Shown: positions 8,948 through 58,996 of the stretch, piece by piece
How the letters are laid out: every line of letters begins with the position of its first letter
How positions within the stretch are numbered: the first letter of the stretch is position 1
Sequence record: NC_070967.1
Direction: 5' to 3' (one strand)
Length of the DNA stretch: 64,000 nt
Made by a program: the position numbers and the translations under genes
Notes under the pieces: model-generated
Told to the model about the DNA's origin: nothing
What the model saw: only the letters and a program-made list of their open reading frames with translations
Database searches by the model: none

Positions 8948-8964
8948 TTTAGCGGAATGTTTCA

Positions 8965-9823: not shown

Positions 9824-9856
9824 CTTTACAACAACGAATCCAGGTATTTTTAGATA

Positions 9857-10819
9857 ATGATTATTTTAGGAGCAGGTCTGGCTGGTACATTAGCTGGACT
9901 AATTAATCCTCAGGCTTTGATCCTAGAAGGATCAAAGTCCGTTGACGATATGAGAATGCATAAAGCTGTTCTCAGATTCAGAGACGATAAGATCGGTAAA
10001 TTGACTGGCGTACCTTTTACTAAGATCAAGGTCCGTAAGTCAATTCATATCGACAATAAAGACTATTTGGAATGCACTCCTCGACTAGCGAATATGTATT
10101 CGAAGAAAGTCACTGAAGGATATTCAGATCGTTCGATCTGGAATCTAGAGACTAGCGATCGATTCATTGCTCCTACGAATTTCCATGAGATTCTTATGAG
10201 CTACTGTGGTGATCGTATCAAGTTCAATCATAGTGTCACTGCAATCAAGTCAGATATGATTTATGCAAAAGACGATGTAACGATTGAACGAGATGATGCT
10301 CCTATCGTTAGCACACTACCAATGCCTCTTCTAGGTCGTGTCATTGGTAAGCCATTCGACATCAAGTTCGAATCTAAGCAGATCAAGGTCTCTCGCTACA
10401 AGGTGAAAGGTGCCAAGATCAATCAAACGATCTATTTCCCAGGAACTGAGACACTTGCATATCGTGCATCGATGGTTCAAGATATTCTGATTATCGAGAA
10501 GATTGAAGACGATAATGGAGCAATTAACGATCGAGTTGATGATGCGTATATTATCAATGCGTTCGGTCTAGATACTCTTGATGTTGAATTCATTGAAGAT
10601 GCATCTCAGCTTGGTAAGATCACAGCAATTGATGAGAAGGTTCGTAAGAATTTCATCTTCAATGTGACACGTGATCTGAATGTATACTCATTAGGTAAAT
10701 TTGCATTATGGAAGAATCATATACTGCTCGATGATGTCTATGATGATCTGTTTAAGATCAAGGCATACATGGGTGGTACTGATTATGACCGTATGAAGAG
10801 TAGTTTTGGTAATGCATAG
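9857..10819 (+). CDS. FAD/NAD-dependent oxidoreductase-like protein
   Basis: N-terminal Rossmann IILGAGLAG; C-terminal YSLGKFALW resembles flavoprotein G-R-F-x-W motifs. Confidence 0.7.
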   Translation: MIILGAGLAGTLAGLINPQALILEGSKSVDDMRMHKAVLRFRDDKIGKLTGVPFTKIKVRKSIHIDNKDYLECTPRLANMYSKKVTEGYSDRSIWNLETSDRFIAPTNFHEILMSYCGDRIKFNHSVTAIKSDMIYAKDDVTIERDDAPIVSTLPMPLLGRVIGKPFDIKFESKQIKVSRYKVKGAKINQTIYFPGTETLAYRASMVQDILIIEKIEDDNGAINDRVDDAYIINAFGLDTLDVEFIEDASQLGKITAIDEKVRKNFIFNVTRDLNVYSLGKFALWKNHILLDDVYDDLFKIKAYMGGTDYDRMKSSFGNA

Positions 10820-11093
10820 AAACGTTGAAGAGATCGTTAGATCATCCTTCGACGGATCGAAATGTCCAGTATTTCTGGAGAGACATATGAGAGTCTCTCC
10901 AGATGGTCAAAGACTTGCTCGAATTATTATGAACAAGTTTGATATTTTCGATACGAACGAAGTCTCTTATAATCTCGTAGAATATTACAATCCAGAAGAT
11001 GGTGAGGAATCATTTCTCATTCATATTAAAGATGACAAGGATGTCTATTTTGATATCCAGGTACCTTCTAAGGCTATTTCTAGTTATATCTGA
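10812..11093 (+). CDS. Hypothetical protein
   Basis: Packed ORF. Confidence 0.55.
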   Translation: MHRNVEEIVRSSFDGSKCPVFLERHMRVSPDGQRLARIIMNKFDIFDTNEVSYNLVEYYNPEDGEESFLIHIKDDKDVYFDIQVPSKAISSYI

Positions 11094-11101
11094 AAGTCAT
11101 T

Positions 11102-11674
11102 ATGAACCATATTATGTTAGACTTTGAGACACTCGACACTAAACCTAGTGCAGTCGTGATGTCCGTAGGTATCGTTGCATTTGACCCTCTAGCTAACGAT
11201 ACCATTGAAACCCTCCGTAATGATCCTCACAGAAAATTGTATCTAAATCTGCAATTCGATGATCAGATCAAAAATGGTCGTACTATATCAGAAGATACGA
11301 TCAGATGGTGGTTTGAGGATAAACTTGCAGAAGCTCGATCCAAACTCAAAAGTACTGATCTTGTAAGTACTCCATTAGCTCTGACTCTAATCGATAATTT
11401 TATCCTGAAACATGATATCAGATACAGTTGGGGTAATGGATCTGACTTTGATAATGCGATCTATGACGATCTTCATCGTACGTTTAATCGTCTTAATCGC
11501 ATTAAGTATAAGAACAAGAGATGTGCTCGTACGATCTTCGGTATGACTAATAAAAAGTACAATCCTAAGGATTTTAACATCCTTGAACATGATGCAATTG
11601 AAGACTGTTACTTTCAAATCCTTCGTCTTCAAGACATGTTCAGAAATCATCTCACAGGAATCGATTTCTCATGA
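11102..11674 (+). CDS. DEDD 3'-5' exo(ribo)nuclease, Rv2179c/RNase AS-like
   Basis: MLDFETL, WGNGSDFDNAI, HDAIEDC. Confidence 0.85.
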   Translation: MNHIMLDFETLDTKPSAVVMSVGIVAFDPLANDTIETLRNDPHRKLYLNLQFDDQIKNGRTISEDTIRWWFEDKLAEARSKLKSTDLVSTPLALTLIDNFILKHDIRYSWGNGSDFDNAIYDDLHRTFNRLNRIKYKNKRCARTIFGMTNKKYNPKDFNILEHDAIEDCYFQILRLQDMFRNHLTGIDFS

Positions 11675-12045
11675 TACTATTCATGCATGAAGATGGATCC
11701 TACTACAGTAGTGAAGAGATCTTCCAAGACATTCATACTAATATAGATACTTCAGATGAGGGATCTTTTCTGCTCAAATATCTCGAGAGAGGATTTGAAC
11801 CTCCAGTAGATGCTACGTCTGAGACAAAGTATGAGTATCATCTTGCCAAAATTGGATTTGGTCGATGGATCCGTAACTCGTACGGTCTATGGCAAGAAGA
11901 TAATCCTCATGTTGTACTGAATCCTACTCCGAACGATGAAGGCATTATTGATCATCCACTATTTCCAGACAATCTTAGTGGAACTATAATCAATAGATTG
12001 ATCCAGCACTATCAGTCTAAACTCCCGCAGGTGGAAAATGTATGA
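11671..12045 (+). CDS. Hypothetical protein
   Basis: ATGA overlap. Confidence 0.6.
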   Translation: MILFMHEDGSYYSSEEIFQDIHTNIDTSDEGSFLLKYLERGFEPPVDATSETKYEYHLAKIGFGRWIRNSYGLWQEDNPHVVLNPTPNDEGIIDHPLFPDNLSGTIINRLIQHYQSKLPQVENV

Positions 12046-12340
12046 TGAAGTCTACTCTCGAGTGAGATGTACAAAGTACATTATTCGATATGTTACAGAA
12101 GGATATCCTTCGAGTATTCATCTTGACTATACTGTAGTTCCAGTCGAAGGTGATCTCGTTCATGCTGAGGTTCATACGTCTCACTCTTTTGATATTAAAG
12201 AATTCGTAGTAGGTGCGAGTACATATAATATGTCTCAAATTTTCGATACTCATGAAGGAGCTGAGACTGCAGCTAAGAAGAGAATTCGTAACGACTACGA
12301 AAAGACGAAATCTCTATTAGAACGCTTCAATCTGGCATAA
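12038..12340 (+). CDS. Hypothetical protein
   Basis: Packed ORF. Confidence 0.6.
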   Translation: MYDEVYSRVRCTKYIIRYVTEGYPSSIHLDYTVVPVEGDLVHAEVHTSHSFDIKEFVVGASTYNMSQIFDTHEGAETAAKKRIRNDYEKTKSLLERFNLA

Positions 12341-12378
12341 GCCTTTCTAATTGTCCAGCACCAAATAGGTAATTTATA

Positions 12379-13179
12379 ATGGTAAATAGAGCCGTAGCTA
12401 AAGTACGACTTATTAACAATACTAAGTTCGCAGATTCACTTCTCGTCTTTAGTAAGAATACTCGACTGACAATGTCTCCTGATATGTATGATCAGATTGT
12501 TAATCGAGAAGGTCAATGGACTGATGAAAAGATCAGTGAAGAACTTGACTACATGGCTAACACTATTCCTAGCAGCTGGGAATTTTGCGACTACTACTTC
12601 TTGATCTCAGGTGTGTCAAGAGCATTCACGCATCAGTTTGTTAGGAATCGTACAAACTCTTATGCACAACAGACAATGAGAGTTCTGGATATGTGCGAGT
12701 TTGATTATGTCTTTACTCGACCATATACTGATCTTCCGACGGATCGAGAACCGACTAAGGAAGAATTCATTAATATGTCTTATGACTTCCATACTAATAA
12801 AGCATTGGAAGAAGTCCAGAAGAGATATAATGCTATGATTGAGGATGGAGTACCTGCAGAAGATGCACGAGGCATTCTCCCTACAAACATCGCTACCAAC
12901 ATTCTTGCGAAGATCAATCTTCGTACGTTTGCTGATATGGCTAAGTCTCGTACAGGTGGACGTACTCAAGGTGAGTACCAGATGATCATGAATCAGATGG
13001 TTGATGAAGTTTTGAAGGTACATCCATGGGCTGAGAAATTCTTCTTTAAGCAGGGTCGCGATTACTTCAAGGATCTCGAAGATCTATGTGCTGAAATCTT
13101 TGGGTCTGGTACAACCAAAGAGAATCTGCATACCAAGGGTCGATTCTTGAAAATTATCGACAAGATGCGTAAAGGTTAA
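12379..13179 (+). CDS. thyX: Divergent ThyX-family flavin-dependent thymidylate synthase-like protein
   Basis: ISGVSRAFTHQFVR, EDARGILP and NLR are typical of ThyX; RHRx7S reads RNRx7T. Confidence 0.8.
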   Translation: MVNRAVAKVRLINNTKFADSLLVFSKNTRLTMSPDMYDQIVNREGQWTDEKISEELDYMANTIPSSWEFCDYYFLISGVSRAFTHQFVRNRTNSYAQQTMRVLDMCEFDYVFTRPYTDLPTDREPTKEEFINMSYDFHTNKALEEVQKRYNAMIEDGVPAEDARGILPTNIATNILAKINLRTFADMAKSRTGGRTQGEYQMIMNQMVDEVLKVHPWAEKFFFKQGRDYFKDLEDLCAEIFGSGTTKENLHTKGRFLKIIDKMRKG

Positions 13180-15149: not shown

Positions 15150-15872
15150 ATGACAACGAATACTAGTGAGAAATCTCTGAAGAATGACATTGCTGTTAGT
15201 TCTCCAGATAAGAAGAGACTGACATTCGCTATCGACTTCGATGGCGTTATTTATCCATACAAGAATGGATATAACAATGGGCTCATGTCTGAAGATCCCA
15301 TTCCAGGTGCTCGAGATGCACTGATTCACCTTCGCAATGAAGGTCATAAGATCATAATCAACACCTGTCGAGGTGCTGTAGAAGATCTTAAATCTTACTT
15401 CAATCTCCATGACATTCCATTCGATGAAATCAATGAGAACTCAGATAACTATGAGGACTCAAATAAGGGTAAACCTTTTGCTGATTATTACATCGATGAT
15501 CGAGCTATTCGATTCGAAGGCGATTGGTCCCTCACATTAGATGAGGTACGTCGCAAGAGATTCCCATGGTTCATTAAGTCTGAGAATAAGATTGCAGCAG
15601 ATCTTATGAATGACTCAGCAGAACTGTATCGACAGCGTAATCTTGTTTATGGCGACTCATACCGTCGTCACGGTGAGATTATGGCTAAACTATTTCCTAA
15701 TGGCGTAACCTTGAAGACAGCCGAAGATTTTAATCGATTCGGTATCGTTAACATGAAGATTTCTAAGGTTACAAGATATTGTCAGAATTTTGAGAAGGGT
15801 GGTCATCTTGACTCAGTGATCGATGATGGTGTTTATACCTTCATGCTTGCTGAGCTTGATATGTCCAAGTAG
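15150..15872 (+). CDS. HAD phosphatase fused to a helical DUF6378/Nmad1-like domain
   Basis: N-terminal IDFDGVI...YIDDRA (HAD motifs I and IV); C-terminal RN..YGDSY...K..RY...H.DS..D..VY. Confidence 0.65.
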   Translation: MTTNTSEKSLKNDIAVSSPDKKRLTFAIDFDGVIYPYKNGYNNGLMSEDPIPGARDALIHLRNEGHKIIINTCRGAVEDLKSYFNLHDIPFDEINENSDNYEDSNKGKPFADYYIDDRAIRFEGDWSLTLDEVRRKRFPWFIKSENKIAADLMNDSAELYRQRNLVYGDSYRRHGEIMAKLFPNGVTLKTAEDFNRFGIVNMKISKVTRYCQNFEKGGHLDSVIDDGVYTFMLAELDMSK

Positions 15873-27408: not shown

Positions 27409-27435
27409 GCGAAGTTAGGTGCGATAAACCTTCCT
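27409..27435 (+). promoter_or_regulatory. Bipartite motif copy (GCGAA-N13-AACCTTCCT)
   Basis: Upstream of the SSB gene. Confidence 0.6.
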
Positions 27436-41546: not shown

Positions 41547-41573
41547 GCGAAGGAGCGTCCCTTAAGCCTTCCT
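41547..41573 (+). promoter_or_regulatory. Bipartite motif copy (GCGAA-N13-AGCCTTCCT)
   Basis: Exact consensus right after a terminator, ahead of the vWA gene. Confidence 0.65.
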
Positions 41574-46410: not shown

Positions 46411-46991
46411 ATCTAATATTCTTAGATTTCGATGGAGTTCTGAATTCTCAGGACTCCTATCTTGTCCGCCACCATTTATGGAATAGTAGTCAACGAGTAG
46501 AATCGATAGCTTGTCCAGATATTACTTCTGTCAGACTTGTAGAGATCCTAGTTGATGCTATTGATGCAAGAATCGTAATTTCGTCATCCTGGAGGAGTGG
46601 AACATCGATTGAAGATCTAAGATTAATTCTTAGAAATGAGTTCTCATTTAATTACTCAAATAAAGTGATTGGTAAGACTAGACCTCATTTCTACGACAAA
46701 CCTAATGAGATCAGAGGTGACCAGATTCAGCACTGGATGAAAATGTATGAGTCTGGAAATTTCATCTTAGATCTTATTGATCTTGATAATAATTATCTAT
46801 ATAATGATAATAAGAATTATAATAATATAGATAATTATATTATTCTTGACGACGATTCAGATATGCTTGAATGTCAGATGGATCACTTTGTAAGAACTGA
46901 TTTTACATCAGGATTCAATTTCAAGTCTCTACAAGCTGGATTACGGATTGTAGGGATGTCTGAACAGGACTTATTCAAGTCAGCGAAGTAG
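46407..46991 (+). CDS. HAD-superfamily protein, Swiss-Army-Knife RNA-repair type
   Basis: FLDFDGVL, ISSSWR, RGDQI..W, YIILDD. Confidence 0.85.
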   Translation: MNLIFLDFDGVLNSQDSYLVRHHLWNSSQRVESIACPDITSVRLVEILVDAIDARIVISSSWRSGTSIEDLRLILRNEFSFNYSNKVIGKTRPHFYDKPNEIRGDQIQHWMKMYESGNFILDLIDLDNNYLYNDNKNYNNIDNYIILDDDSDMLECQMDHFVRTDFTSGFNFKSLQAGLRIVGMSEQDLFKSAK

Positions 46992-47009
46992 AGGCCGGAG
47001 AGCCTTCCT
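46983..47009 (+). promoter_or_regulatory. Bipartite motif copy (GCGAA-N13-AGCCTTCCT)
   Basis: Exact consensus heading the unit that contains the topoisomerase genes. Confidence 0.65.
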
Positions 47010-47549: not shown

Positions 47550-47750
47550 ATGTCGAGCACCAGAGCTAAGAAAGAAGACTTGACTCCAGAGCAAATCATG
47601 GAGCTAAAGGAGACTCACGTTATCCTTCACGAGGATGATGTTTATATCGAGTTCGTTCCCAATATTGTGGAAACGATTATGCTCGATAAGTTTTTCAGTG
47701 CAATCAACCCAGAAGAAGAGAATAATGGCGACAACAACCTCACAACCTAG
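47550..47750 (+). CDS. Hypothetical protein
   Basis: AAGGAG RBS. Confidence 0.55.
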   Translation: MSSTRAKKEDLTPEQIMELKETHVILHEDDVYIEFVPNIVETIMLDKFFSAINPEEENNGDNNLTT

Positions 47751-49050
47751 TGCAGCTCCGATCGCACAGATTGAAGCTCGTAATCTTATCGAGGCTGATT
47801 ATCTCGAGTACGGTGCATATGTGAACACGACTCGATCTGTTCCAGGCTATGATGGTCTGAAGTCAGGTCAACGTCGTGTTCTCTTTGCATTAAGAGATGT
47901 AGATGATGGATCTGATGAAATTCCTTCTCTGGAAGTAGTTACTCAGACTCTGAAGAAGTACCATCCTCACGGTGATGCCTCTATCTACGATACGATGTGT
48001 CGACATATCCACAAGGGATTTATCGAAGGTCGTAGTAACTTTGGTACCAATCACTTGATGGAAGAAATCGGTGCAGCCGCATACCGATATACCTATGTGA
48101 AGCCTCATAAGCAATTCACTGATGGTGCGTTTCGATTCATCGATCAGGTACCGACTGTTGAGAATGAATATGGTCTCAATGAACCTACGTATCTACCAGT
48201 ACCGATTCCTCTAGGACTAACAACTGGTGCAAAAGGTATCGGTATTGGTCTTCTCTGCAACATTCCTGCATTTTCTCCTAAGTCTCTTTTTGATGCACTT
48301 ATGGCAGATGATCCTTCTCGTCTGAAAGCACCTGCTGGTACTTTCATTGTAAGTGGCGATATGGATAAGCTCTGGAAGACAGGTGAAGGCTGGATCCAAT
48401 ATGGTCTCAAGTGCTATCAGACTTGGCATGATCTGGACGGTAAGACCGTATCAGTTATTGAAGGATCTGGTCGTATCTTCAAGCCTCGTATTTGGGATAC
48501 TTTCTCTACATTGATTGAAGATGAGAGTGTTTATACTCGAGACGAATCTGGTGAAAAGATCAAGATGATCATCACTCGAGTCAAGGGTCTTAAGCGTATT
48601 ACTGATGAACAAGTTCACCAGATGGCTCAGCAAGCAGCTGTCGAGAAGATGTTCTTCCGTATCTACGTTACTGAGAACAAGGTCGTTTATCGTAAGTCGA
48701 TGAAGGACTGGATGCAAGAATTGTGGGCTCGTTACGAGAAAGTAGTTGATACTTACAAGACCACTCAGGTTAACGATTTGAATCATCGAATCAGAATTCT
48801 GAATCTAATTCCTGTAGCAGCACCTGGCATTCTTCAGGATCTTCCGATCTCTGAAATTGCTAAGACAACTGGAGCTAGTGAGGCTGATCTTCGAGAAGTC
48901 GAAGGTAAGTCGATCAAAATGCTCCGTAAGTCAGACTTTGGTGCTCAGATTACTGATCTCAATAAGAAGATTACCAATGTCCAGAAGATCAGTGCTAAGG
49001 CTCTAGCAGTTGACTTCGTTGATATGCTTGAGAAGGCTCAGGCTATCTAA
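47725..49050 (+). CDS. Type IIA topoisomerase A subunit (GyrA/ParC/gp52-like, no CTD)
   Basis: DGLKSGQRR, KYHPHGDASIY, AAAYRYT catalytic Tyr. Confidence 0.92.
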   Translation: MATTTSQPSAAPIAQIEARNLIEADYLEYGAYVNTTRSVPGYDGLKSGQRRVLFALRDVDDGSDEIPSLEVVTQTLKKYHPHGDASIYDTMCRHIHKGFIEGRSNFGTNHLMEEIGAAAYRYTYVKPHKQFTDGAFRFIDQVPTVENEYGLNEPTYLPVPIPLGLTTGAKGIGIGLLCNIPAFSPKSLFDALMADDPSRLKAPAGTFIVSGDMDKLWKTGEGWIQYGLKCYQTWHDLDGKTVSVIEGSGRIFKPRIWDTFSTLIEDESVYTRDESGEKIKMIITRVKGLKRITDEQVHQMAQQAAVEKMFFRIYVTENKVVYRKSMKDWMQELWARYEKVVDTYKTTQVNDLNHRIRILNLIPVAAPGILQDLPISEIAKTTGASEADLREVEGKSIKMLRKSDFGAQITDLNKKITNVQKISAKALAVDFVDMLEKAQAI

Positions 49051-49076: not shown

Positions 49077-51023
49077 ATGACTGAATCAATTTCGATTATG
49101 ACGCCACTCCAGCAGATGTTCCATCGTCGTGGTATGTACATCGGTGGCGCTGAGAATCCTGAAATCCTAGCTAAGGAACTTATCGATAACGCACTCGATG
49201 AACTCCTCTGCGGTTATGCCGATCGAATTGAATTCGATTGGGATCTCAAAGAAGGATGGTTCAGGATTCGAGATAATGGTAGAGGCATGCCTCTATCTCA
49301 GTTCCATACTGAAGATCAGGACATGTCTGGATTGAATGGAGCTATTCAGGCTCGTCTTCTCTTCACTCGACCATTCTCGTCTGGTAAGTACGACAAGAAT
49401 AACTACAAGTATTCGTCCGGTACGAATGGTGTAGGTATCAAGGCAGTCAACGTTTTCAGTACGAAGACTGAAGTACGTGTCAAGGATAAGAAGCTCGTTC
49501 ATAATGGCGATCTGTATCATCTCACTCTTGGATGGACTGAGCCAGAACGTGTCCAGACAATTGATGAGCAGTGGATTGATGCTAGCACGATTGAAGACTT
49601 CTGGTGGTCTACTGAAGTCAAATGCTATCCGAATATGGAAGTCTTTAAGACGATCAAGTGCAAGATTCGTGAGACTCAGCTTCAGCTAGCTAAGACTTCG
49701 AAGCCTACCTGTAAGATCGTTGTCAATGGTGAAGAGATCAAGCCATTCTCATTCCGTGAGAGTGTTACTAATGATCTCCTTCTGAATAAGACTTTCAAAG
49801 TCAATGTCACGGTTGGATATACCAACTTCGAGATTGAACTTGGATGGTCCTCTAAAGATTTCAATTCCTACTATCGTGGAGCAGTCAATCTTGGTTCATG
49901 TAATGAAGGTTGGCATATCAAGGAGACCAAGTATGCAGTAGGTCGAGTACTTGCTGGATATGATGATCTGTTGACTAACTCGGATGCCGAGTACGGTCTC
50001 CGTATGTTTATCAACTGCCTGATCTCTGAACCGATCTACACTTCTCAGACCAAGGAGAAGTTAGCTGGTGTGACTGACTTCGATGTATTCAATGAAGCAT
50101 TGATGCGTAAGAAGTATGCCGATCTTATCGAGAAGGATGAGAACGGTAGAGAGAATGTCGTCAAGGCTAAGGAAGCAGTCAAGAATGATCCTGAATTCCT
50201 GAAACCTGAGTTGCTCTATGCTGCTATTCAGAAAGCTGTCAAGAAAGAACTTGACCAGGATGAATCGTTCAAGACAGTTCTTGTTAAGAGAATTGTTGAG
50301 TACAAGAAATCTGTCCAGAAACTATCTGAGCAGAGCTTCATCAATTCTATCGTTAAGACTGGCAATCATAAGATCGCTAGAAATTCGGTAGTAGGTATCA
50401 AGGAAGCAGGGTCTGCTGATCGTGCTAAGTGCGAACTCTTCATCTGCGAAGGTAAGTCTGCAGAAGGTAATCTTCTTCAGAAGAGAGATCGTATGTTCCA
50501 GGCAGTCTTCCCTCTTCGTGGTAAGCCATTGAATGCTGCCAATGTGAGTGACATCAAACAGATTCTTGAGAATCGTGAGATGAAGACTCTGGTCAACGGT
50601 ATCGGTGCAGGTATTCTTCCTCAGGTCGATCTTACTCATGCTCGTTACGGTAAGTTGATCATCCTTACAGACGCTGACCCAGACGGTAAGAATATTGAAG
50701 CTCTCATTATCGGAGCTCTCTTGTTCTTGAATCCTAAGGTCATTGAAGCAGGTATGCTATATACAGTAGCTGCTCCTCTGTACAAGCAGGATGGTAAGCT
50801 TCTATATTCAGAGAAGGATCTGAATATGAAGAAGAAATTCAAGAGATTCAAAGGTCTCGGATCGATGATGGCTGATGAACTTGAAGCTAGTGCTCTGAAG
50901 TCAACTACACGTAAGCTACGTCAAATCACATTAACTGAAGCTCGTGAGAAAGCTCTCGAAATCATTACTTCTTCTCACGAGAAGAAGCGTATTATGACAA
51001 CCAATAAAATCCTAGTCGAGTAA
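49077..51023 (+). CDS. Type IIA topoisomerase B subunit (GyrB/ParE-like)
   Basis: ELIDNALDE, DNGRGMP, GTNGVG, EGKSA, PLRGK, TDADPDG, RFKGLG. Confidence 0.95.
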   Translation: MTESISIMTPLQQMFHRRGMYIGGAENPEILAKELIDNALDELLCGYADRIEFDWDLKEGWFRIRDNGRGMPLSQFHTEDQDMSGLNGAIQARLLFTRPFSSGKYDKNNYKYSSGTNGVGIKAVNVFSTKTEVRVKDKKLVHNGDLYHLTLGWTEPERVQTIDEQWIDASTIEDFWWSTEVKCYPNMEVFKTIKCKIRETQLQLAKTSKPTCKIVVNGEEIKPFSFRESVTNDLLLNKTFKVNVTVGYTNFEIELGWSSKDFNSYYRGAVNLGSCNEGWHIKETKYAVGRVLAGYDDLLTNSDAEYGLRMFINCLISEPIYTSQTKEKLAGVTDFDVFNEALMRKKYADLIEKDENGRENVVKAKEAVKNDPEFLKPELLYAAIQKAVKKELDQDESFKTVLVKRIVEYKKSVQKLSEQSFINSIVKTGNHKIARNSVVGIKEAGSADRAKCELFICEGKSAEGNLLQKRDRMFQAVFPLRGKPLNAANVSDIKQILENREMKTLVNGIGAGILPQVDLTHARYGKLIILTDADPDGKNIEALIIGALLFLNPKVIEAGMLYTVAAPLYKQDGKLLYSEKDLNMKKKFKRFKGLGSMMADELEASALKSTTRKLRQITLTEAREKALEIITSSHEKKRIMTTNKILVE

Positions 51024-51025
51024 CA

Positions 51026-51925
51026 ATGAACGATTTTAATGTAATCCTTACAGGTTCTGCTGGTTACATTGGAAGCATCGTTGGCGATCGTCTACTGAAA
51101 TCCAATTCGATTGATTTGGAGACAGTAGACGTCGTCTCTGACGTTCTTCCAGTAGATACTATCTTAACTGAAGTTGGTAATCTATCCAACAAGTCATCTG
51201 ATGTCCTTGTTCATCTTGCTGCAAAGATCTCAGTAGTCGAATCTCATAAGCAAGCTCGTCAGTACTACGAGAACAATTGTAGTCAATTCCATGAGATGTT
51301 GAATGATCGTGGTAACTATTTCAAGCATGTTATCTATGCATCCTCTTTCTCGATTTATGATTCTGATTTGAGTATCTATCCTCAGTCTGTCTATGCATCC
51401 ACCAAATACGAAGGTGAATGGATTCTCAAGAGATGGGCTCAGATGACGAATCGAGATTATTCAATCCTACGATTTGCCAATCCAATTGGCGTTAGTCAAT
51501 CACTTCACTCTCATATTGCAGACCGTATTCAATCGAGCTATGCTAATGTTATGTGGAGACTTGCTCGATGCAAATTACTAGGTGAGATGTTCTACATTCA
51601 TGATCTACCTGGTATGACACGTGATTTTTATCCCGTTGAATGGATTGGATACGCTATCGATTGGATCGCGAAGAATGGTCCCGTAGGTACTGTAAATCTA
51701 GGTAGTGGTAAGCCTGTATCGGTTATGGATCTTCTTCAGCATATCTGTGAGAAGTATAATATCAGTTACAAATATGTTCTACCACCTGAAGGTACTGCTC
51801 TAGGTATTACCAAGAAGGTTGATGTATTCAAAGAAGGTATTCCTGATTTTGATACATACGATCCAGTTGTATATTGTGAGAAGTCGTTTTTAGATTATCT
51901 ATCGTTGATTCAGAACGCGAACTAA
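51026..51925 (+). CDS. NAD-dependent epimerase/dehydratase (GalE-like extended SDR)
   Basis: TGSAGYIGS, HLAA, YASTK, LRFANPIG. Confidence 0.88.
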   Translation: MNDFNVILTGSAGYIGSIVGDRLLKSNSIDLETVDVVSDVLPVDTILTEVGNLSNKSSDVLVHLAAKISVVESHKQARQYYENNCSQFHEMLNDRGNYFKHVIYASSFSIYDSDLSIYPQSVYASTKYEGEWILKRWAQMTNRDYSILRFANPIGVSQSLHSHIADRIQSSYANVMWRLARCKLLGEMFYIHDLPGMTRDFYPVEWIGYAIDWIAKNGPVGTVNLGSGKPVSVMDLLQHICEKYNISYKYVLPPEGTALGITKKVDVFKEGIPDFDTYDPVVYCEKSFLDYLSLIQNAN

Positions 51926-51943
51926 CGCTAGATTAGCCTTCCT
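51917..51943 (+). promoter_or_regulatory. Bipartite motif copy (GCGAA-N13-AGCCTTCCT)
   Basis: Exact consensus heading the glycosyltransferase unit. Confidence 0.65.
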
Positions 51944-51970
51944 TCTCGTAGAATGAATAAGAGGATCACC

Positions 51971-52153
51971 ATGAAAGATCTACGTGAATTCAAATCTAAG
52001 CTTGATGCTAAGTTCGATACTCAGACATCTTGGGGTAAGAATCAGATCAAGCAAGTCATCAATGATACTTATATTGAAATCATTGAAAGTAAAGTAGAAG
52101 GTACTATCGAGCAGTCGACTCCTTCTAATCGTATCGACGAAGACTCTAAGTAA
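51971..52153 (+). CDS. Hypothetical protein
   Basis: GAGG RBS before ATG 51971. Confidence 0.6.
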   Translation: MKDLREFKSKLDAKFDTQTSWGKNQIKQVINDTYIEIIESKVEGTIEQSTPSNRIDEDSK

Positions 52154-52175
52154 TTTTCTAGTCAAGGTTAACAAT

Positions 52176-53363
52176 ATGAATTTTCTTTATATCACAAGAA
52201 GCATTGATCCGCTAGCTGCTGATCATCGTCCTGAAGCATATGATCGTTATCGATTCTATGCTCCGATGATGTCACGACTAGCTGAGATCGGTGGAGGTGA
52301 CGTCTACCTTCAGACTCGTTATAATCCTAAGGATTATCGTCCTGGTGGTACGATTGAAAGAATGGAAAGAAATTTCCGTCTTCCTAAGAAGTACAAGACT
52401 GGTGATAAGATTGATATGATCGTATGTGCCATCTTCTGCCCAGACGATGACATTACATTCAATGAGGATCTGAACAAGTTTCGTCAGACTCTTGAAGATA
52501 CAGGTGCTCCGTATATCTATCATGACTCTGACAAAGAATTCTCTACTCAGGACGATCAGCAAGATCTTTTCCATCCAGGAAATAAGAACTATTTCCTTCA
52601 GACAATATCTAAGCTTCCAGAGGATGATATTCTCCGATCCCGACTACGCTGCGTGGCTACGTCGGTTCCGGATGCAGATTATCATCAGATTCTGAAGGAT
52701 AATCTCAAGGTCGATGTAACGTATCTACCTGCTACGTTCTGGGGAGACTGGAAAGATAAGTTTGGATACACTCCTCTTTCAGATCGTAAGTACGATCTGA
52801 CATTCCTTCGTGACTTCTATCTGAATCCGAAGCGTTCAGTCATTTTGAAGAATCTTGGTACTGGTGTATCGGATATCAGTGTTCTTCTTGGATCTCGTAG
52901 TGGCGACCCTTCTAGTCGTGGAGGATACATCAGCCATAAGGTTCCGACGATTGATTTTGATCAGATGCGTCAAGGAGCTACGTACAATGATCTATCGAAG
53001 TACATGTCTAAGTCTCGTCTGACTCCGTCTACGAGTATTTATATGCGTGTCACTTCTAAGCTATTCGAAGCAGCTGAGAGTCGTACTCTAGCACTACTCT
53101 TCTCTCCGTGCTTCTATTCAGACGTAGTTGATCATCCTTCTGAGGCAGATGCTTATCTGAGTCAACTTGCTCTTGTAATTCCAGGATCCACTACTGTAAG
53201 TCAGTTGATTACACGTATTCGTAGTCTGACTGATGAAGAATACTTGAAGCTTGTTGAGGTTCAGGATAAGCTCGTTGAGACTGTATTCAGTATCAAATCT
53301 GATTACATCACAGGCAAGCTGACCAAGATCATCACGGATTATGTAGGTAATGTGAATGGCTAA
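52176..53363 (+). CDS. Putative GT-B glycosyltransferase (CgeB/T4 BGT-like C-terminal motif)
   Basis: YDLTFL...R...L and TSKLFEAA resemble the R.FEA/RVWET motifs; sugar-enzyme context. Confidence 0.45.
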   Translation: MNFLYITRSIDPLAADHRPEAYDRYRFYAPMMSRLAEIGGGDVYLQTRYNPKDYRPGGTIERMERNFRLPKKYKTGDKIDMIVCAIFCPDDDITFNEDLNKFRQTLEDTGAPYIYHDSDKEFSTQDDQQDLFHPGNKNYFLQTISKLPEDDILRSRLRCVATSVPDADYHQILKDNLKVDVTYLPATFWGDWKDKFGYTPLSDRKYDLTFLRDFYLNPKRSVILKNLGTGVSDISVLLGSRSGDPSSRGGYISHKVPTIDFDQMRQGATYNDLSKYMSKSRLTPSTSIYMRVTSKLFEAAESRTLALLFSPCFYSDVVDHPSEADAYLSQLALVIPGSTTVSQLITRIRSLTDEEYLKLVEVQDKLVETVFSIKSDYITGKLTKIITDYVGNVNG

Positions 53364-54234
53364 TGTTCTAGTTACTCTCATTACCAATCGACCAGATATT
53401 TCTTCGGAACGATGGATCGGTACCATCGGAAAGCTATCTAAGCTTTCCGAGTACCATGATATGACCTACTCGATTCTTCTACAACCTCCTTTTACAGTAG
53501 AAGACTGTGATAAAGTTCGTTCTCGAGTAGTTGAAGCACTCGGTCCTAAGAATCAGGTAGTCGTAGAGCATTTTATTAATCCTCCAGGTCCATTCAATTT
53601 TAGAACTGCTCGAAATCAGGCTATGTTGAATGTACCGTATCTGAATACTTTTGATTACGTTCTTATCACTGACGATGACTTCAAGTTCAGTGGTCCTACT
53701 CCTAAGGGATATGACTCATGGGAACGTTATCATCAGGCTATTAAGTATCTCGATGAGAACCGTCGATGTGGTGGTGTATTAATCAAAGGTATGTTTGGAT
53801 CTCCTCCAGTCGATAAGGGTGGAAATGAGGTATCAAAAGTACATGACGAGTACTACTCAACCAATCGAGGCATTCTTCATCGTAATGTGATGAAGTACGA
53901 TAACGTAGATTGGATCTACTCAAATGAATGCTTCGATTATCCTTCTGCTCTCGAGGATGCAGCAGCTTGTTTCTCTCGAATTGAGCTCGGCTACTATTAT
54001 GCTCGTATCTGGAAGTCACCCACCACACCTCTTCCTGTGAAGCAGACATGTGCTGATGACATCCCTGATGACAATATTTACTCGCGACATATGGTCAATG
54101 AAGTAGGTATTGGTAAAGCTATTCGTGAACGTTATGACGATCCTACATGGGAAGTCGATCAGAAGCGTATGCCTAAGAAACTCAACAATCTTAAACTCGA
54201 AGCCATGAACAATCGTGGATGGGTTGTAACCTAA
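53356..54234 (+). CDS. Putative GT-A glycosyltransferase
   Basis: TARNQAM...VLITDDDFKF (DxD), EDAA acceptor-side acidic motif. Confidence 0.55.
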   Translation: MANVLVTLITNRPDISSERWIGTIGKLSKLSEYHDMTYSILLQPPFTVEDCDKVRSRVVEALGPKNQVVVEHFINPPGPFNFRTARNQAMLNVPYLNTFDYVLITDDDFKFSGPTPKGYDSWERYHQAIKYLDENRRCGGVLIKGMFGSPPVDKGGNEVSKVHDEYYSTNRGILHRNVMKYDNVDWIYSNECFDYPSALEDAAACFSRIELGYYYARIWKSPTTPLPVKQTCADDIPDDNIYSRHMVNEVGIGKAIRERYDDPTWEVDQKRMPKKLNNLKLEAMNNRGWVVT

Positions 54235-54245: not shown

Positions 54246-54485
54246 ATGAAACATCTTCTTGAGAAAGCAACGACTCTCATCAAGCAGTCTAATAAACTGA
54301 CTCTGGAATACCGTAAGTCTCCAGATGAATTGAAATCTAAGACTCAAGAGATCGTCAAGCACTTTCTCGAATTCAACGAGATCGAATCGAAAGAAGATTT
54401 CATTGATCAATTGTCGTCCAAATCTGAGGAGACAGGTAATATGGATTACCTGTCTGCAGCTGAGATTATCCGAGAGTACTCTTAA
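54246..54485 (+). CDS. Hypothetical protein
   Basis: AAGGAG RBS. Confidence 0.6.
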   Translation: MKHLLEKATTLIKQSNKLTLEYRKSPDELKSKTQEIVKHFLEFNEIESKEDFIDQLSSKSEETGNMDYLSAAEIIREYS

Positions 54486-54790
54486 TGTTTAAAATTACTG
54501 TAGAGTCGTCTCAACCTGTTAAGAGTATCAACATTGAGTTCGGTGAAACTCAGGAGACGAAGGCTGAATTCTATCCTGTACCGACCTTTGAGACTAGAGG
54601 TGTAGAAAGTCTTAAATACGAGACTCCTCCTTCATCTGAGTCATATGAAGACGTTCTAGCAAGACGAGCATCGACTGTATCGACTACTCCTGTAAAGCCT
54701 AAAGAGACTGAGACTGCTCCAGAAGTAGTCGAGGATCTCACTAATCGACCTGCACTTGTTGATCAATCCTTTGCAGGATCTACTTTCTAA
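54485..54790 (+). CDS. Hypothetical acidic, likely disordered protein upstream of the actin-like gene
   Basis: TAATG overlap; Glu/Thr/Pro-rich. Confidence 0.6.
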   Translation: MFKITVESSQPVKSINIEFGETQETKAEFYPVPTFETRGVESLKYETPPSSESYEDVLARRASTVSTTPVKPKETETAPEVVEDLTNRPALVDQSFAGSTF

Positions 54791-54798: not shown

Positions 54799-55764
54799 AT
54801 GAAAACTGTATTAGGTCTTGATCCTGGGTACGGAGACTTCAAGGTATGCTTCGGTAATTCTAAAGGGATTATCTCTAAGCTATACAAGTTCAACTCCGTA
54901 CTAGGTCGTGTTGATGTCAGTCAACATATCAACGATACTCGAGTTTATGGATATAAAGGTACGACCTACTATGTAGGTGAGATGGCCTTGAAACTTGAGT
55001 CATCTCGAATCATCGACTTGATGTCTTACAACAATCTGGAGACATTCTCTCCTCTCCTGATTGAACATGTCATCAATGAACTAGGAGAAGTTCCAGATAT
55101 CGTCGTATGTGGTCTTTCGATCGCTCACGTTGACTATTCAGGATACTATCGAGATGCGATTCTTAACTATCTTGTTAAGGAGAAGAATCTTCCAATCAAG
55201 GATGTCCGCATCATCCCACAAGGTGTAGGTGGTAAGTTAACGTATGACAAGTATGGTCGTACATTCCCTGCCCTCACATCAGAATTCAGTGATGACAACA
55301 ACTATGTAGGTTGTGATATTGGATTCAATACACTCGATGTATTCCATGTCATTCAGAACAAGGTATCTCCTAACTTGATTAGAGGTATTGAGAGTCAAGG
55401 TGTAGTCAAGATCGTAACTCGACTTCTTGAGTATATCAAGAATGACTACAGTCTGGAGTTCTCTGTTAAGGAAGGTAAGAACATCCTTGATAATGGTCAA
55501 TTTAAGATCCGTGGACGTGAATTTGATGTCACCAAACAGATTGAAGTGATCAAACGTTCTTATCTTGAAGAAGTCAAGGAACTCATCGAGAATGAATTCG
55601 GAGCAGTACTTGACAAGGTCGAGAAGATCAAGATGTTTGGAGGAGGTTCATATCTCTTCAATACGATGAATGACTCCTTCATCGAAACTCCAGAATCTCG
55701 TGCTGAATACTATAATTCCATCGGGAATTATCTACATGGCTTGACAATTGTCGAGAAAGATTAA
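54799..55764 (+). CDS. ParM/StbA-like actin-fold ATPase
   Basis: GLDPGYGDFK (phosphate 1), IPQGVG (connect 1), CDIGFNTLD (phosphate 2), FGGGS (adenosine), N..G (connect 2). Confidence 0.88.
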   Translation: MKTVLGLDPGYGDFKVCFGNSKGIISKLYKFNSVLGRVDVSQHINDTRVYGYKGTTYYVGEMALKLESSRIIDLMSYNNLETFSPLLIEHVINELGEVPDIVVCGLSIAHVDYSGYYRDAILNYLVKEKNLPIKDVRIIPQGVGGKLTYDKYGRTFPALTSEFSDDNNYVGCDIGFNTLDVFHVIQNKVSPNLIRGIESQGVVKIVTRLLEYIKNDYSLEFSVKEGKNILDNGQFKIRGREFDVTKQIEVIKRSYLEEVKELIENEFGAVLDKVEKIKMFGGGSYLFNTMNDSFIETPESRAEYYNSIGNYLHGLTIVEKD

Positions 55765-55768: not shown

Positions 55769-55807
55769 AAGGTCTACTAGAAGAGATTCTAGTAGACCTT
55801 TTCTTTT
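55769..55807 (+). terminator. Intrinsic terminator
   Basis: AAGGTCTACTAGAA / TTCTAGTAGACCTT perfect 14-bp stem, then TTCTTTT. Confidence 0.85.
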
Positions 55808-56186: not shown

Positions 56187-56915
56187 ATGGCTCGTTGCTA
56201 TGTAGGATGTAGTGGATTCTCGTATAATCATTGGAATGATAACTTCTACCCTGCAGGAGTAGAGCGGTTTTCATTTTATACGAGTCAATTTGATTCATTA
56301 GAGATCAATAGTTCATTCTACAGATTACCTAGTGCAAGCGTATTCTACTCATGGTATCGACGATCACCTGCTCATATGACATTCACTGTGAAAGCTCCTC
56401 AGACGATTACTCATCGTAAGAAGCTAAAGGATGCTGACGATATAGTTCAGAGATTCTATGAGAATACTCTTGAGCTAGGTGACAAGATGAAATGTGTCTT
56501 ATGGCAGTTACCTCCTAATTTCTCCATAAGAATGTATGATCGTGTCAAGAAATTCTGTGACAGTATTCATAACAGATTTCCTAATTCAGCATTCGAGTTC
56601 AGACATCCTTCATGGATGCAGACTCACGTACCTCAACTTCTATCTGCATACGACTTTGAGTTTGTACGTACAGATTTTCATAAATACGTAAATGTATCCA
56701 TGGATGGATCCTCGTCTAAATTCCAGTACTATCGATTACATGGACCTACAGGTCAGTATCACGGTCGCTACACTGATGAGTTTCTTGAGAATATAGCTGA
56801 TCGTCTAACGGATGGATCATTCGTATTCTTCGATAATGATAGTGGAGGTCAAGCTCCTAGGGATGCTAAAAGATTAATCAAAATTCTAGAGACAAGAAAT
56901 GAAATTAAATTATAG
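56187..56915 (+). CDS. DUF72 (YecE-like) TIM-barrel protein
   Basis: GCSGFSY..W...FYP, EINSSFYRLP, FTVKAP..ITH, LWQLPP, EFRHPSW, RLHG, FFDND. Confidence 0.92.
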   Translation: MARCYVGCSGFSYNHWNDNFYPAGVERFSFYTSQFDSLEINSSFYRLPSASVFYSWYRRSPAHMTFTVKAPQTITHRKKLKDADDIVQRFYENTLELGDKMKCVLWQLPPNFSIRMYDRVKKFCDSIHNRFPNSAFEFRHPSWMQTHVPQLLSAYDFEFVRTDFHKYVNVSMDGSSSKFQYYRLHGPTGQYHGRYTDEFLENIADRLTDGSFVFFDNDSGGQAPRDAKRLIKILETRNEIKL

Positions 56916-57444
56916 AGCATATGCAGGAATTGGATCAAGAAGTACTCCTCCACATATTCTTGAATTTATGAGAATTCTAGCATTCAAGCTTGGATCTCAA
57001 GAAGATCCGTGGACTGGTCGATCAGGTCACGCTGATGGTGCAGATGATGCATTCGAAGTAGGTATGGAACAAGCTAATGGACCTATGGAGATCTTTCTAC
57101 CGTGGAGAGGTATGGCTAACAGTCGATGTAAGAGTGATTCTCCATACTATGAAATCAAAACAATTGCTTACGATCTAGCTTCTAGGATTCACCCTAAGTG
57201 GTACGGATTAACTCATGGAGCTAAGAAACTTCATGCTAGGAATACTTATCAAGTCCTAGGTTACGATCATCAGACTTGGAGTAAAGCTGTTGTATGCTAT
57301 ACATCTGACGGTCTACCAATTGGAGGTACTCGTACAGCGATTAAGATCGCAGAGATGCACGGTATTCCGGTTATCAATCTAGGTGATCCTGAGTGTAAAT
57401 ACGAAACTCCTGATCAAGTTGTGGAATATTTAAACTCTCTATAG
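56899..57444 (+). CDS. SLOG-superfamily (DprA/Smf-like) protein
   Basis: YAGIGSR, SGHADGAD, LHARN, GGTRTAI. Confidence 0.8.
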   Translation: MKLNYRAYAGIGSRSTPPHILEFMRILAFKLGSQEDPWTGRSGHADGADDAFEVGMEQANGPMEIFLPWRGMANSRCKSDSPYYEIKTIAYDLASRIHPKWYGLTHGAKKLHARNTYQVLGYDHQTWSKAVVCYTSDGLPIGGTRTAIKIAEMHGIPVINLGDPECKYETPDQVVEYLNSL

Positions 57445-57445: not shown

Positions 57446-57472
57446 GCGAATCTAGCGTGGGAAAGCCTTCCT
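57446..57472 (+). promoter_or_regulatory. Bipartite motif copy (GCGAA-N13-AGCCTTCCT)
   Basis: Exact consensus 30 nt before the pyruvyl transferase ATG. Confidence 0.65.
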
Positions 57473-57502: not shown

Positions 57503-58405
57503 ATGTTTGACATTAATGTTGATAATCCTAACCTTGCTGCGATCCTGGAATCGTATCGTGGAAAGAAGATTGACTACTTTCATAATAATGGTAACGCAGG
57601 TGATGCGATCATCGCAGTAGGTACGTATCAGACTTTTGATAAGTTTGGTATTGACTACTCTGCTTACAATAAACCTCGTGCTCATAAGCAAACGAGCGAT
57701 ACTGTTTTCATCGCAGGTGGTGGTAATCTCGTAAGTTATTATCCTGATTGTGAGAAGGCTATCAAGGAAGCTATGAAGAAGTACGATAGAATCATCGTTC
57801 TCCCTCATTCTATCCGAGGTAAAGAAGATCTTCTGAAGTCAATGGATAAGCGTTTCACGATTTTTACTCGTGAGGTACCTTCTGATAATTATGTAAGATC
57901 AGTGGTCAATTCAGATGTGACTGTTCATCTGGAACATGATATGGCATTCTTTATGGATGTCAAAGCTATCTTTGAAGATAATTCTATTAAAGATAAAGTC
58001 GAGAAATTCTATCGTAACAAGCTCCGATCTGTTAATCGTCTACCTGATGACATTATCGGTAAAGACAACTACTGCTTCCGTGAAGATGTTGAGGCAGTTG
58101 TTAATGTGAAGTCTTCTCAGAACGTAGATATTTCCTACGTATTCGAACGAGGACTTGATCGTACTAATGCTTTTATTGCAGCAGCAGCATTCTTGAAATA
58201 TATTGATGCTTCAAAGTCAATTACTACAAGTCGTCTTCATACAGGCATTGGTGCAGCTATGTGCGGTACTCCTGCTACGGTATTTGATAATTCATATGGC
58301 AAGATTTCTAGTATCTACGAATTCTCAATGAAGGATCGTGGATACAACTTCCGTGTAGGTCTCATTGATGAAATGAGATCAATTATCGAACGAATTGAGG
58401 ACTGA
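57503..58405 (+). CDS. Polysaccharide pyruvyl transferase-like protein (EpsI/EpsO type)
   Basis: GNAGD, GGGNL, PHSI, TRE, HDMAF, TSRLH, DNSYGK. Confidence 0.85.
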   Translation: MFDINVDNPNLAAILESYRGKKIDYFHNNGNAGDAIIAVGTYQTFDKFGIDYSAYNKPRAHKQTSDTVFIAGGGNLVSYYPDCEKAIKEAMKKYDRIIVLPHSIRGKEDLLKSMDKRFTIFTREVPSDNYVRSVVNSDVTVHLEHDMAFFMDVKAIFEDNSIKDKVEKFYRNKLRSVNRLPDDIIGKDNYCFREDVEAVVNVKSSQNVDISYVFERGLDRTNAFIAAAAFLKYIDASKSITTSRLHTGIGAAMCGTPATVFDNSYGKISSIYEFSMKDRGYNFRVGLIDEMRSIIERIED

Positions 58406-58996
58406 ATGAACATCTTCATCTTGGATCCAGATCCGATCAAGTCTGCTAGATCATACGTCGCGAGTCATCAGAAGATTATTCTGGAGGCTACTCAGATGTT
58501 ATGCACTAACGTAAGACTAACAAATGGTAAGCTTAGAGTCCCTATTCATCCATTTACAGGTCGTAAGAGAAAATTCTGGGTCCTCGATGGAGAGGAGTTA
58601 ATGTACAAGGAGAATCCTGAGAATCCTTCTAAGGGATTCTTCTGGATCAAGTCTTCTAACAAGATTTATGGTGCATGTCATGCTAATCATCCTTGGACTG
58701 TATGGGGTCGTAAGTCTAGGGAAAATTTCGTATGGATGCAAAACTTTGTTGAGATACTTAACAATGAATTTATGAGTCGAGGATATAGATCCCATGGATC
58801 AGCCTCTATAGCTAAGTCTCTAATCGTACCTGATTTACCTGAGACTGGACTGACTCCGATGCCTCACTGCGTTGATCCTGGATCTAAATCGGATGACGTA
58901 GTTGAAAGCTATAGAAATTATTATCGTAGAAGCAAGAAGCACTTACATGTATGGAAATCCGTTCCTATACCTGATTGGATAAATAATGAAGAATAG
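58406..58996 (+). CDS. Pyrimidine-dimer DNA glycosylase / endonuclease V-like protein
   Basis: MNIFILD.DP..SA, KIILEATQML, H.NHPW..W, YRNYY. Confidence 0.85.
   Translation: MNIFILDPDPIKSARSYVASHQKIILEATQMLCTNVRLTNGKLRVPIHPFTGRKRKFWVLDGEELMYKENPENPSKGFFWIKSSNKIYGACHANHPWTVWGRKSRENFVWMQNFVEILNNEFMSRGYRSHGSASIAKSLIVPDLPETGLTPMPHCVDPGSKSDDVVESYRNYYRRSKKHLHVWKSVPIPDWINNEE

Follow-up and report, generated by a model that had tools for sequence, protein, structure and literature searches.

Glycosylated DNA is a major counter-defence of bacteriophages, which blocks restriction enzymes as well as CRISPR nucleases and affects the sequencing and cloning of phage genomes. To our knowledge, the well-understood routes all begin with either a ThyA-type hydroxymethylase or hydroxylase or a TET/JBP dioxygenase. 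That phages glycosylate their DNA by means of glycosyltransferases (GTs) of the GT-A and GT-B folds and of epimerases is already known. The phage DNA GTs comprise JGT-like GT-A enzymes, which carry the pattern R...DDD...EDY/F and have TarP as top match in the PDB, and enzymes of the GT-B fold; the 5-hydroxymethylcytosine (5hmC) clusters contain either two successive GTs (subclass I) or a GT together with an epimerase on which the GT activity depends (subclass II) (Pyle et al., bioRxiv 10.1101/2023.12.21.572611 / Cell Rep 2024). Rhizobium phage RL38J1 and other Pootjesviridae contain 5-hydroxycytosine glycosylated with Gal-Glc in their DNA; this modified base involves a flavin- and O2-dependent ThyA homologue (D169N), a phage UDP-galactopyranose mutase (UGM) and three GTs (Lee et al., NAR 2026, PMC13326640). 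Here we describe four consecutive genes at positions 51026-54234 of a 64,000-nucleotide (nt) stretch of Rhizobium phage RHph_Y65 (Y65), hereafter the window, which encode an epimerase (gp259), a small protein (gp260) and two putative GTs (gp261 and gp262). With these genes, Y65 appears to possess the sugar-adding half of a DNA glycosylation system without the known acceptor-making enzymes.

Over its whole length, the window agrees exactly with bases 62001-126000 of the Y65 genome (NC_070967.1, 206,821 bp, Kleczkowskaviridae, genus Cuauhnahuacvirus), and coordinates are window positions unless this record is named. At 95-100% identity, the segment 51026-54234 was recovered from no more than eight close relatives, which stem from soils of Mexican bean fields, and no public sequencing runs are listed for the phage. 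RefSeq annotates the first gene as nucleotide-sugar epimerase and the other three as hypothetical proteins. An earlier reading of this DNA (the original prediction) had proposed a donor-sugar enzyme and two transferases within a replication regulon. The overlapping, coupled genes and a shared upstream motif described below agree with this proposal; as for the two transferases, the analysis established a GT-A enzyme, while the GT-B enzyme is merely suggested. The genes are as follows (ORF, open reading frame; aa, amino acids):

51026..51925, + strand: gp259, epimerase with Pfam, PHROG, NCBIfam and PDB matches
51971..52153, + strand: gp260, small acidic ORF of 60 aa with only a sub-threshold DUF6137 match
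52176..53363, + strand: gp261, 395 aa, soluble near-orphan, probably GT-B-like (Glyco_trans_1_2-like)
53356..54234, + strand: gp262, 292 aa, soluble, predicted GT-A-fold glycosyltransferase

We tentatively favour the interpretation that gp259, gp261 and gp262 serve to glycosylate a modified pyrimidine of the phage DNA in successive steps. The three genes would constitute a cytoplasmic glycosylation module expressed together with the replication genes, in which the epimerase would turn a host UDP-sugar into its 4-epimer. The putative inverting-type GT-A enzyme gp262 with its DDD metal/donor site and gp261 would then successively add sugars to a hydroxyl-bearing pyrimidine in replicated DNA. The acceptor hydroxyl would probably be provided by a flavoenzyme-ThyX-phosphatase module, which the window also contains some 38 kb upstream, and not by a ThyA-type hydroxymethylase or a TET/JBP enzyme, because Y65 has neither. 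The resulting di- or oligo-glycosylated base would shield the genome from host nucleases.

The GT-A-like ORF had originally been recognised by its motif ITDDDF, and structure prediction bore this assignment out. No sequence match to gp262 exists in Pfam, PHROG, NCBIfam or the PDB; a profile search revealed 27 metagenomic homologues with 24-32% identity, and none of these 28 family members matches a Pfam GT model (Glycos_transf_2, TET-associated GT etc.) at E<=1. In the alignment of the 28 sequences, R86, D106, D107 and E200 are invariant, and D108 (at least 90%) and E201 nearly so; gp262 itself possesses R86, D106-D108 within ITDDDF (aa 104-109) and E200-D201. The AlphaFold2 model calculated with the family alignment (predicted local distance difference test, pLDDT, 81; predicted template modelling score, pTM, 0.83) places the DDD directly after the strand 101-105, as expected of a GT-A DxD motif. 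A Foldseek search with this model retrieved 76 PDB chains at E<=1e-3, of which the best 50 are all GT-A glycosyltransferases. The matches include AvpGT, TarS, TarP, GnT-I, RmlT and glycogenin with template modelling (TM) scores of 0.45-0.58, and TarP and TarS rank within the top 16. Among Swiss-Prot structures the top 30 matches are all GT2 enzymes, and the list obtained from BFVD is filled by viral GT-A proteins (self-model TM 0.92). Comparison with the corresponding gene of the relative TM61 indicated strong purifying selection (ratio of non-synonymous to synonymous differences per site, pN/pS, 0.13). From the predicted structure we are confident that gp262 is a GT2-like glycosyltransferase of the GT-A fold. 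Its family, for which no Pfam model exists, appears to be undescribed, and gp262 is the founding cultured member.

gp262 fits the pattern R...DDD...ED(Y/F) of the JGT-like phage DNA enzymes, a similarity at the level of the pattern and not of a direct alignment with JGT. Compared with the clusters reported by Pyle et al., Y65 likewise has a soluble GT-A protein with R...DDD...E(D/E) and TarP-like structural matches, a pairing with an epimerase, two adjacent GTs and a neighbourhood of replication and partition genes. Y65 differs in that a C5-methyltransferase, a 5mYOX/TET enzyme and a ThyA-type synthase were found neither near the GT genes nor elsewhere in the genome, in that gp262 matches no GT model including that of the TET-associated GTs, which are only mid-ranking structurally, and in that it combines an epimerase with two GTs.

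The genomic context of the gp262 homologues bears on the acceptor. In eight metagenomic contigs of a lineage encoding a PolIII-alpha-UDG polymerase, the homologue is located just upstream of the polymerase gene with at most 1-2 small ORFs in between. In seven of the eight, the genes for ThyX and a small HAD-like protein, often joined by that for a Methyltransf_11 protein, lie upstream of the GT-A gene; the eighth contig starts just before it. The gene order in this lineage is flavoenzyme, ThyX, methyltransferase where present, HAD phosphatase, GT-A and polymerase. A local BLAST comparison of four of these contigs (L006 and L008-L010) with Y65 revealed four genes in common, namely the GT-A gene and three genes which in Y65 are arranged in the proposed acceptor module:

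9857..10819, + strand: gp191, flavoprotein of phrog_4828 with an N-terminal GxGxxG and its own motif copy at 9797
12379..13179, + strand: gp196, divergent ThyX
15150..15872, + strand: gp205, phosphatase-like protein of the HAD/polynucleotide kinase (PNK) type

In contig L009, all four genes are consecutive and three of them overlap. Similarly, in a Pam3-like contig (L016) a homologue of gp191 (40% identical), the GT-A gene and ThyX follow each other, the latter two overlapping. A further contig with gp32 and RecA/UvsX genes (L015) carries at 8307-12355 a tight, mostly overlapping operon which encodes an amino-acid:DNA transferase (AADT, PF18724), a 5-hmdU DNA kinase (5-HMUDK, PF18748), orf92, the GT-A protein, a GNAT-like protein and a pyridoxal phosphate (PLP) enzyme. 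Judged by its predicted gene products, this operon is a thymidine-hypermodification cluster of the type composed of 5-HMUDK, AADT and PLP/acetyltransferase enzymes (Lee et al., NAR 2021, PMC8989533), and the gp262 homologue inside it (P0029) is 33% identical to gp262. Y65 itself differs from such clusters by having neither 5-HMUDK nor AADT. No glycosyltransferase is described within 5-HMUDK/AADT clusters in that paper, where the term is absent from the text, and no description of a GT-A gene in such an operon was found in the literature cited here. Among the contexts recovered, which come from three other phage lineages, no gp262 homologue is located beside structural or envelope genes; all contexts are related to nucleotides, replication or DNA hypermodification. 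The original prediction had named DNA, virion protein and host surface as possible acceptors; these associations tip the balance towards DNA. If confirmed by experiment, a GT-A family outside the curated models, which recurs together with ThyX, the flavoenzyme and thymidine-hypermodification enzymes, would be new, as would be a cultured phage that joins such an enzyme to an epimerase and a second GT without any known acceptor-making enzyme. Y65 would then be a tractable cultured phage for the study of a new DNA glycosyltransferase family.

The same neighbourhoods, in which homologues lie directly between the genes for the HAD/PNK-like phosphatase, ThyX and polymerase, could also be explained if gp262, with or without gp261, acted on free nucleotides or nucleosides prior to replication, either on a modified dNMP formed by ThyX, flavoenzyme and phosphatase or in nucleoside inactivation. 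The top solved structural match of gp262, AvpGT, indeed 3'-O-glucosylates nucleoside analogues; this match (TM about 0.45) is, however, no better than many GT2 matches. Moreover, bulky glycosyl-dNTPs would be unlikely substrates for a polymerase, and in all characterised phage systems cited here, sugars are attached to DNA after replication (PMC13326640; 10.1101/2023.12.21.572611). We consider this explanation improbable.

The epimerase gp259 was originally described as GalE-like and coupled to the topoisomerase B gene, and both statements held. The protein of 299 aa matches Pfam Epimerase (2.1e-15) and PHROG 540 (2.3e-25), and its closest solved structures are NAD-dependent epimerases, namely 6dnt (4e-11) followed by several UDP-glucose 4-epimerases. 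It contains the NAD-binding motif G10-S-A-G13-Y-I-G16 (GxxGxxG), a serine-rich ASSFS stretch (105-109) which aligns with SSSAV of 6dnt, and Y123-A-S-T-K127 (YxxxK) which aligns with YAAQK of the same structure. It thus has the Ser...YxxxK arrangement without the Asp-Glu pair which marks 4,6-dehydratases. The best NCBIfam model is GalE (TIGR01179) with 65 bits, far below the curated equivalog cut-off of 262.3, so that gp259 is too divergent for naming its substrate. By these motifs and matches, it is predicted to be a divergent GalE-like, NAD-dependent 4-epimerase of nucleoside diphosphate (NDP) sugars belonging to the extended short-chain dehydrogenases/reductases. Its ATG is located 2 nt past the TAA of gp258, the topoisomerase B gene, to which it is translationally coupled. 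The presence of an epimerase makes a non-glucose sugar a fair assumption for the donor. Between Y65 and TM61, gp259 shows only 82% aa identity (synonymous differences per site, pS, 0.44) as opposed to 98-99% for the flanking topoisomerase and GT genes, which suggests allelic replacement or a diversifying pressure on the donor-sugar enzyme. Two apparent gene fusions in related phages had resembled Rosetta-stone evidence: a 677-aa epimerase-GT-B fusion in RHph_TM39 (L014, 2824-4857) and a gyrase-GT-B fusion with an enlarged gyrase B in RHph_TM21B (L013, 2055-5071). Both were discarded as artefacts of partial assemblies, as the ORFs cross N-filled gaps.

For gp261, which carries the motif TSKLFEAA (aa 293-300) and had been predicted to be GT-B-like, the gene itself was confirmed and the fold was not. 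Y65 and TM61 differ here by 26 synonymous and 3 non-synonymous substitutions (pN/pS 0.03), and gp261 is a real gene under strong purifying selection. Pfam, PHROG, NCBIfam and the PDB yielded no match to it. Beyond the clade of gp261, a word-indexed search of 5.8 billion proteins recovered only a single protein of 45% identity, encoded on a contig of 2.7 kb. When 1.84 billion representatives were scanned in full with HMMER, nothing was added except P0032, P0033 and a repeat protein judged to be spurious, and scans of the IMG/VR and JGI metagenomes gave no homologue. P0032 is a credible remote homologue, which shares 20% identity with gp261, aligns collinearly across residues 69-308 and retains R-x-T-S-K-x-x-E-A-A. 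The AlphaFold2 model from a 4-sequence alignment reached a pLDDT of 46 with only an N-terminal Rossmann-like domain predicted confidently (pLDDT 70-89). Foldseek found no match for this poor model at E 1e-3, the best ones being GT-B-like GtfC and Gtf3 (E 8.5e-3, TM 0.23). Profile comparison by hhalign gave probabilities below 1% for T4 beta-GT and alpha-GT and of 0.3% for the GT1-like neighbour of the gp261 homologue, and similarity of the gp261 profile to the Y65 pyruvyl transferase was insignificant. By protein language model, whole gp261 resembles clusters of viral GT-B, T4-Gluco-transf and PF13524 proteins (similarity 0.96-0.97, 191-201 shared features), and 84 of 100 named matches of its C-terminal half belong to PF13524 (Glyco_trans_1_2); we regard such similarity as a lead and not as a test of the fold. 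Because the structure model failed, the GT-B assignment rests on this similarity and the motif, according to which gp261 is probably a GT-B-like transferase.

Could gp261 and gp262 lack glycosyltransferase activity because their folds have decayed or taken on another role, such as that of regulators which bind sugar nucleotides? The absence of any Pfam, PHROG or NCBIfam GT match for both proteins, together with the lack of a detectable family and the failed model of gp261, would be in agreement with such a role. The strong purifying selection acting on both genes and the catalytic-type residues R86, DDD and E200 of gp262, which are invariant or nearly so in 28 divergent homologues, argue against it and render it highly improbable.

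Both solved glucosyltransferases of phage T4 are GT-B enzymes, hence the original statement that T-even DNA glucosyltransferases include both folds was incorrect for its T4 example. It was correct insofar as GT-A enzymes act on DNA in other phages (10.1101/2023.12.21.572611). As in Y65, the T4 alpha- and beta-glucosyltransferases are soluble proteins encoded among replication and recombination genes, and families with the T4 beta-GT domain are found among the language-model neighbours of gp261. In contrast, gp261 shows no profile similarity to them, gp262 is predicted to have the GT-A fold and Y65 lacks a dCMP hydroxymethylase. The isoelectric point is no guide to DNA binding in these proteins, since T4 alpha-GT is acidic too.

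The original prediction also described the GT genes as a motif-led unit, and this was substantiated. The motif GCGAA-N14-RCCTTCCT occurs in eight exact copies in the window, all on the + strand, compared with 0.01 expected, and every copy is located 19-60 nt 5' of a gene start. Its downstream half alone is present in 13 copies (1.2 expected), and upstream of the helicase (24267) and exonuclease (33553) units it is this half-site alone that is found. The motif probably represents a phage-specific promoter class which serves replication and sugar-related units alike. It and the genes around the GT genes are arranged as follows:

62-88, 3699-3725, 9797-9823, 27409-27435, 41547-41573, 46983-47009, 51917-51943 and 57446-57472, + strand: the eight motif copies
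46983..47009, + strand: motif copy leading the unit with the topoisomerase genes and the epimerase
47725..49050, + strand: gp257, topoisomerase II / gyrase A-like subunit (RefSeq annotation)
49077..51023, + strand: gp258, topoisomerase II / gyrase B-like subunit (RefSeq annotation)
51917..51943, + strand: motif copy overlapping the epimerase stop codon and leading gp260-gp261-gp262-gp263-gp264-ParM-like
54246..54790, + strand: gp263 and gp264, two small acidic ORFs of the same unit
54799..55764, + strand: ParM/Alp7A-like actin homologue, final gene of the unit (Pfam ALP_N and MreB-like_C, PHROG partition protein)
55769..55800, + strand: strong intrinsic-terminator-like hairpin with a 14-bp stem and T-run, closing the unit
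57503-58405, + strand: polysaccharide pyruvyl-transferase family gene (Pfam 3.2e-16) with its own motif copy at 57446-57472

The motif at 51917 and the hairpin 3' of the ParM-like gene define a unit which comprises gp260, gp261, gp262, gp263, gp264 and the ParM-like gene. Within it, the ORFs of gp261 and gp262 overlap by 8 nt, which suggests coupled translation. The products of gp259 to gp264 are all soluble without membrane segments. Co-transcription of the GT genes with topoisomerase II and the sharing of the motif with the helicase and exonuclease units support DNA as the target of glycosylation.

The pyruvyl-transferase family gene 3.3 kb downstream, which has the same motif and whose product may be an accessory sugar-tailoring enzyme of the GT module, fits a polysaccharide better than any known DNA chemistry. 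It thereby supports a different target, namely a host envelope glycan (exopolysaccharide, EPS; capsular polysaccharide, CPS; lipopolysaccharide, LPS) or a virion protein. Remodelling of the envelope would block superinfection or keep progeny off debris; with a donor such as UDP-Gal from the epimerase, the two GTs would add two sugars, which the pyruvyl transferase would cap. Rhizobium EPS is typically pyruvylated and contains galactose, and Kleczkowskaviridae are reported to be unusually rich in carbohydrate-active genes. That SGNH esterases and a protein of the pectin-lyase fold are encoded among the tail genes shows that glycans matter to Y65. In addition, gp262 resembles in structure mostly GT2 enzymes of polysaccharides and teichoic acids, and the remote homologue of gp261 adjoins WbqC-like and GT1-like genes, a context of the polysaccharide type. 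Against a target of this kind stand the solubility of all module proteins and the lack of flippase, polymerase and lipid-carrier genes nearby, the position of the GT genes, which belong to a replication operon and do not share the strand of the structural genes, and the contexts of the gp262 homologues described above. A non-DNA target is less likely than DNA, yet it is the main alternative; should it apply, the module would still be unusual in that envelope or virion glycans would be engineered from within a replication operon. Two further observations concern the flanks of the pyruvyl-transferase gene: between the GT and pyruvyl-transferase units (56187-57444), a gene for a DUF72 protein (1.3e-55) overlaps that of a DprA-like/Rossmann 'recombination mediator' (PHROG 768), and a PHROG 624 'DNA binding protein' gene (58406-58996) follows directly 3' of the pyruvyl-transferase gene.

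Several other findings weigh against DNA glycosylation, first of all the lack of a recognisable acceptor-base pathway. The original prediction had noted that neither a hydroxymethylase nor a TET/JBP gene is visible in the window, and this holds for the whole genome. With T4 gp42 (dCMP hydroxymethylase) as the query, blastp returned no match under E 0.3 among the 1128 ORFs of Y65, and phmmer likewise listed none at E<=10, from which we conclude that Y65 has no ThyA-family hydroxymethylase or hydroxylase. No TET/JBP enzyme was found genome-wide; gp105, the only 2-oxoglutarate (2OG) oxygenase of Y65, was rejected as a candidate since it is prolyl-4-hydroxylase-like. Homologues of 5-HMUDK and AADT are absent from Y65 as well. 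In place of a base-hydroxylating enzyme, gp262 has topoisomerase II and a ParM-like gene in its neighbourhood. Among its viral structural matches, the TET-associated GTs come no higher than 40th and 49th place, and a search of the literature found no study on DNA modification of Y65. Furthermore, the GT genes of Y65 are 38 kb away from ThyX, so that their association with ThyX is based on homology to other phages and not on local linkage. Whole-genome annotation revealed as nucleotide genes of Y65 a divergent ThyX, a dUTPase, a dCMP deaminase, a dihydrofolate reductase (DHFR), a YfbR-like 5'-deoxynucleotidase and a divergent PurA-like protein; the ThyX gp196 is the only gene of the thymidylate-synthase type.

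The flavoenzyme of the proposed acceptor module, gp191, shows a weak similarity to UGM: a profile of six sequences matched fungal and trypanosomal UDP-galactopyranose mutases at E 0.002 in three collinear stretches, which include the YFP...YR and GRF..WR motifs. As this match is weak, we designate gp191 a UGM/amine-oxidase-like flavoprotein. The phosphatase gp205 looks like a HAD phosphatase with a polynucleotide-kinase-like C-terminal part. The RefSeq names of both proteins were rejected: 'polysaccharide deacetylase' for gp191 and 'phosphoheptose isomerase' for gp205 have no Pfam support, and the latter is merely the name of phrog_1238, which the N-terminal half of gp205 matches. The phrog_4828 flavoenzyme is present in 362 phage records, mostly of Pbunavirus. 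In Pbunavirus Banzai and Serratia phage Hera, the gene order is flavoenzyme, ThyX, PNK/HAD-like protein, exonuclease and polymerase, and a module in conserved order is common to Y65, Pbunavirus, Myosmarvirus and the metagenomic PolIII-alpha phages, the polymerases of which are 29-33% identical to that of Banzai.

The DNA of Pbunaviruses F8 and 14-1, long held to be unmodified, was reported to contain thymidine derivatives in TG context, and nucleoside masses of 362 and 390 were read as derivatives with a sugar alcohol and a pentose; the part of the report available to us names no biosynthetic genes for this modification (bioRxiv 10.1101/2025.03.31.646159). Arithmetically, the two masses result when a tetritol (122) or a pentose (150), respectively, is added to 5-hydroxymethyl-deoxyuridine (dU; 258) and one water is subtracted. 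As no genes have been assigned to these sugar-derived thymidines, the flavoenzyme-ThyX-HAD/PNK module, which the Pbunaviruses share with Y65 and the metagenomic phages encoding gp262 homologues, is a candidate, and we infer a connection between this module and the Pbunavirus chemistry. A homologue of gp261 or gp262 and an epimerase were not found in Pbunaviruses; hence the module does not need such GTs, which again argues against a role in the proposed DNA glycosylation. One conceivable route without ThyA or TET/JBP would be that the phrog_4828 flavoenzyme, the divergent ThyX and the HAD/PNK phosphatase put a hydroxyl-rich, sugar-derived group on thymidine or uracil, which the GT-A enzymes of the gp262 family extend. 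In Y65, gp261 and the epimerase-supplied donor would add further sugars, and Pbunaviruses would use the same module. Taken as a whole, this joint claim is rather unlikely; if true, it would at once reveal a novel pathway of base modification and a novel family of DNA glycosyltransferases. If DNA is the target in Y65, its genes would be candidates for explaining the sugar-derived thymidines of the therapeutic Pbunaviruses.

With the Pootjesviridae, Y65 shares the Rhizobium/Agrobacterium host group, the character of a large T4-like rhizobiophage, several GTs, a flavin-dependent sugar/nucleotide enzyme and an implied donor chemistry of the galactose type. In the Agrobacterium phage OLIVR5 of this family, a nucleotide-sugar epimerase gene, the product of which is 23% identical to that of Y65, also adjoins both topoisomerase II genes (L019, 6992-13449). 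Y65 differs in that the acceptor of the Pootjesviridae originates from a ThyA homologue, which Y65 lacks, in that their UGM is a canonical Glf whereas gp191 is weakly UGM-like, and in that no sequence similarity between their GTs and gp261 or gp262 could be detected. Resistance to nine restriction enzymes was reported for the DNA of Agrobacterium phage Atu_ph04, whose genes include those for a UGM, a GT1 and a thymidylate synthase (PMC6630229).

For the PurA-like protein of Y65 (gp019), a role in a Z-genome was considered and found no support: PHROG classifies the protein as PurZ-like, its NCBIfam PurZ score is 36.7 compared with a cut-off of 300, and its PDB matches are ordinary PurA enzymes. 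Its gene adjoins a phrog_2971 gene at 9162-11436 of NC_070967.1, outside the window, and the same pair is present in metagenomic contig L008.

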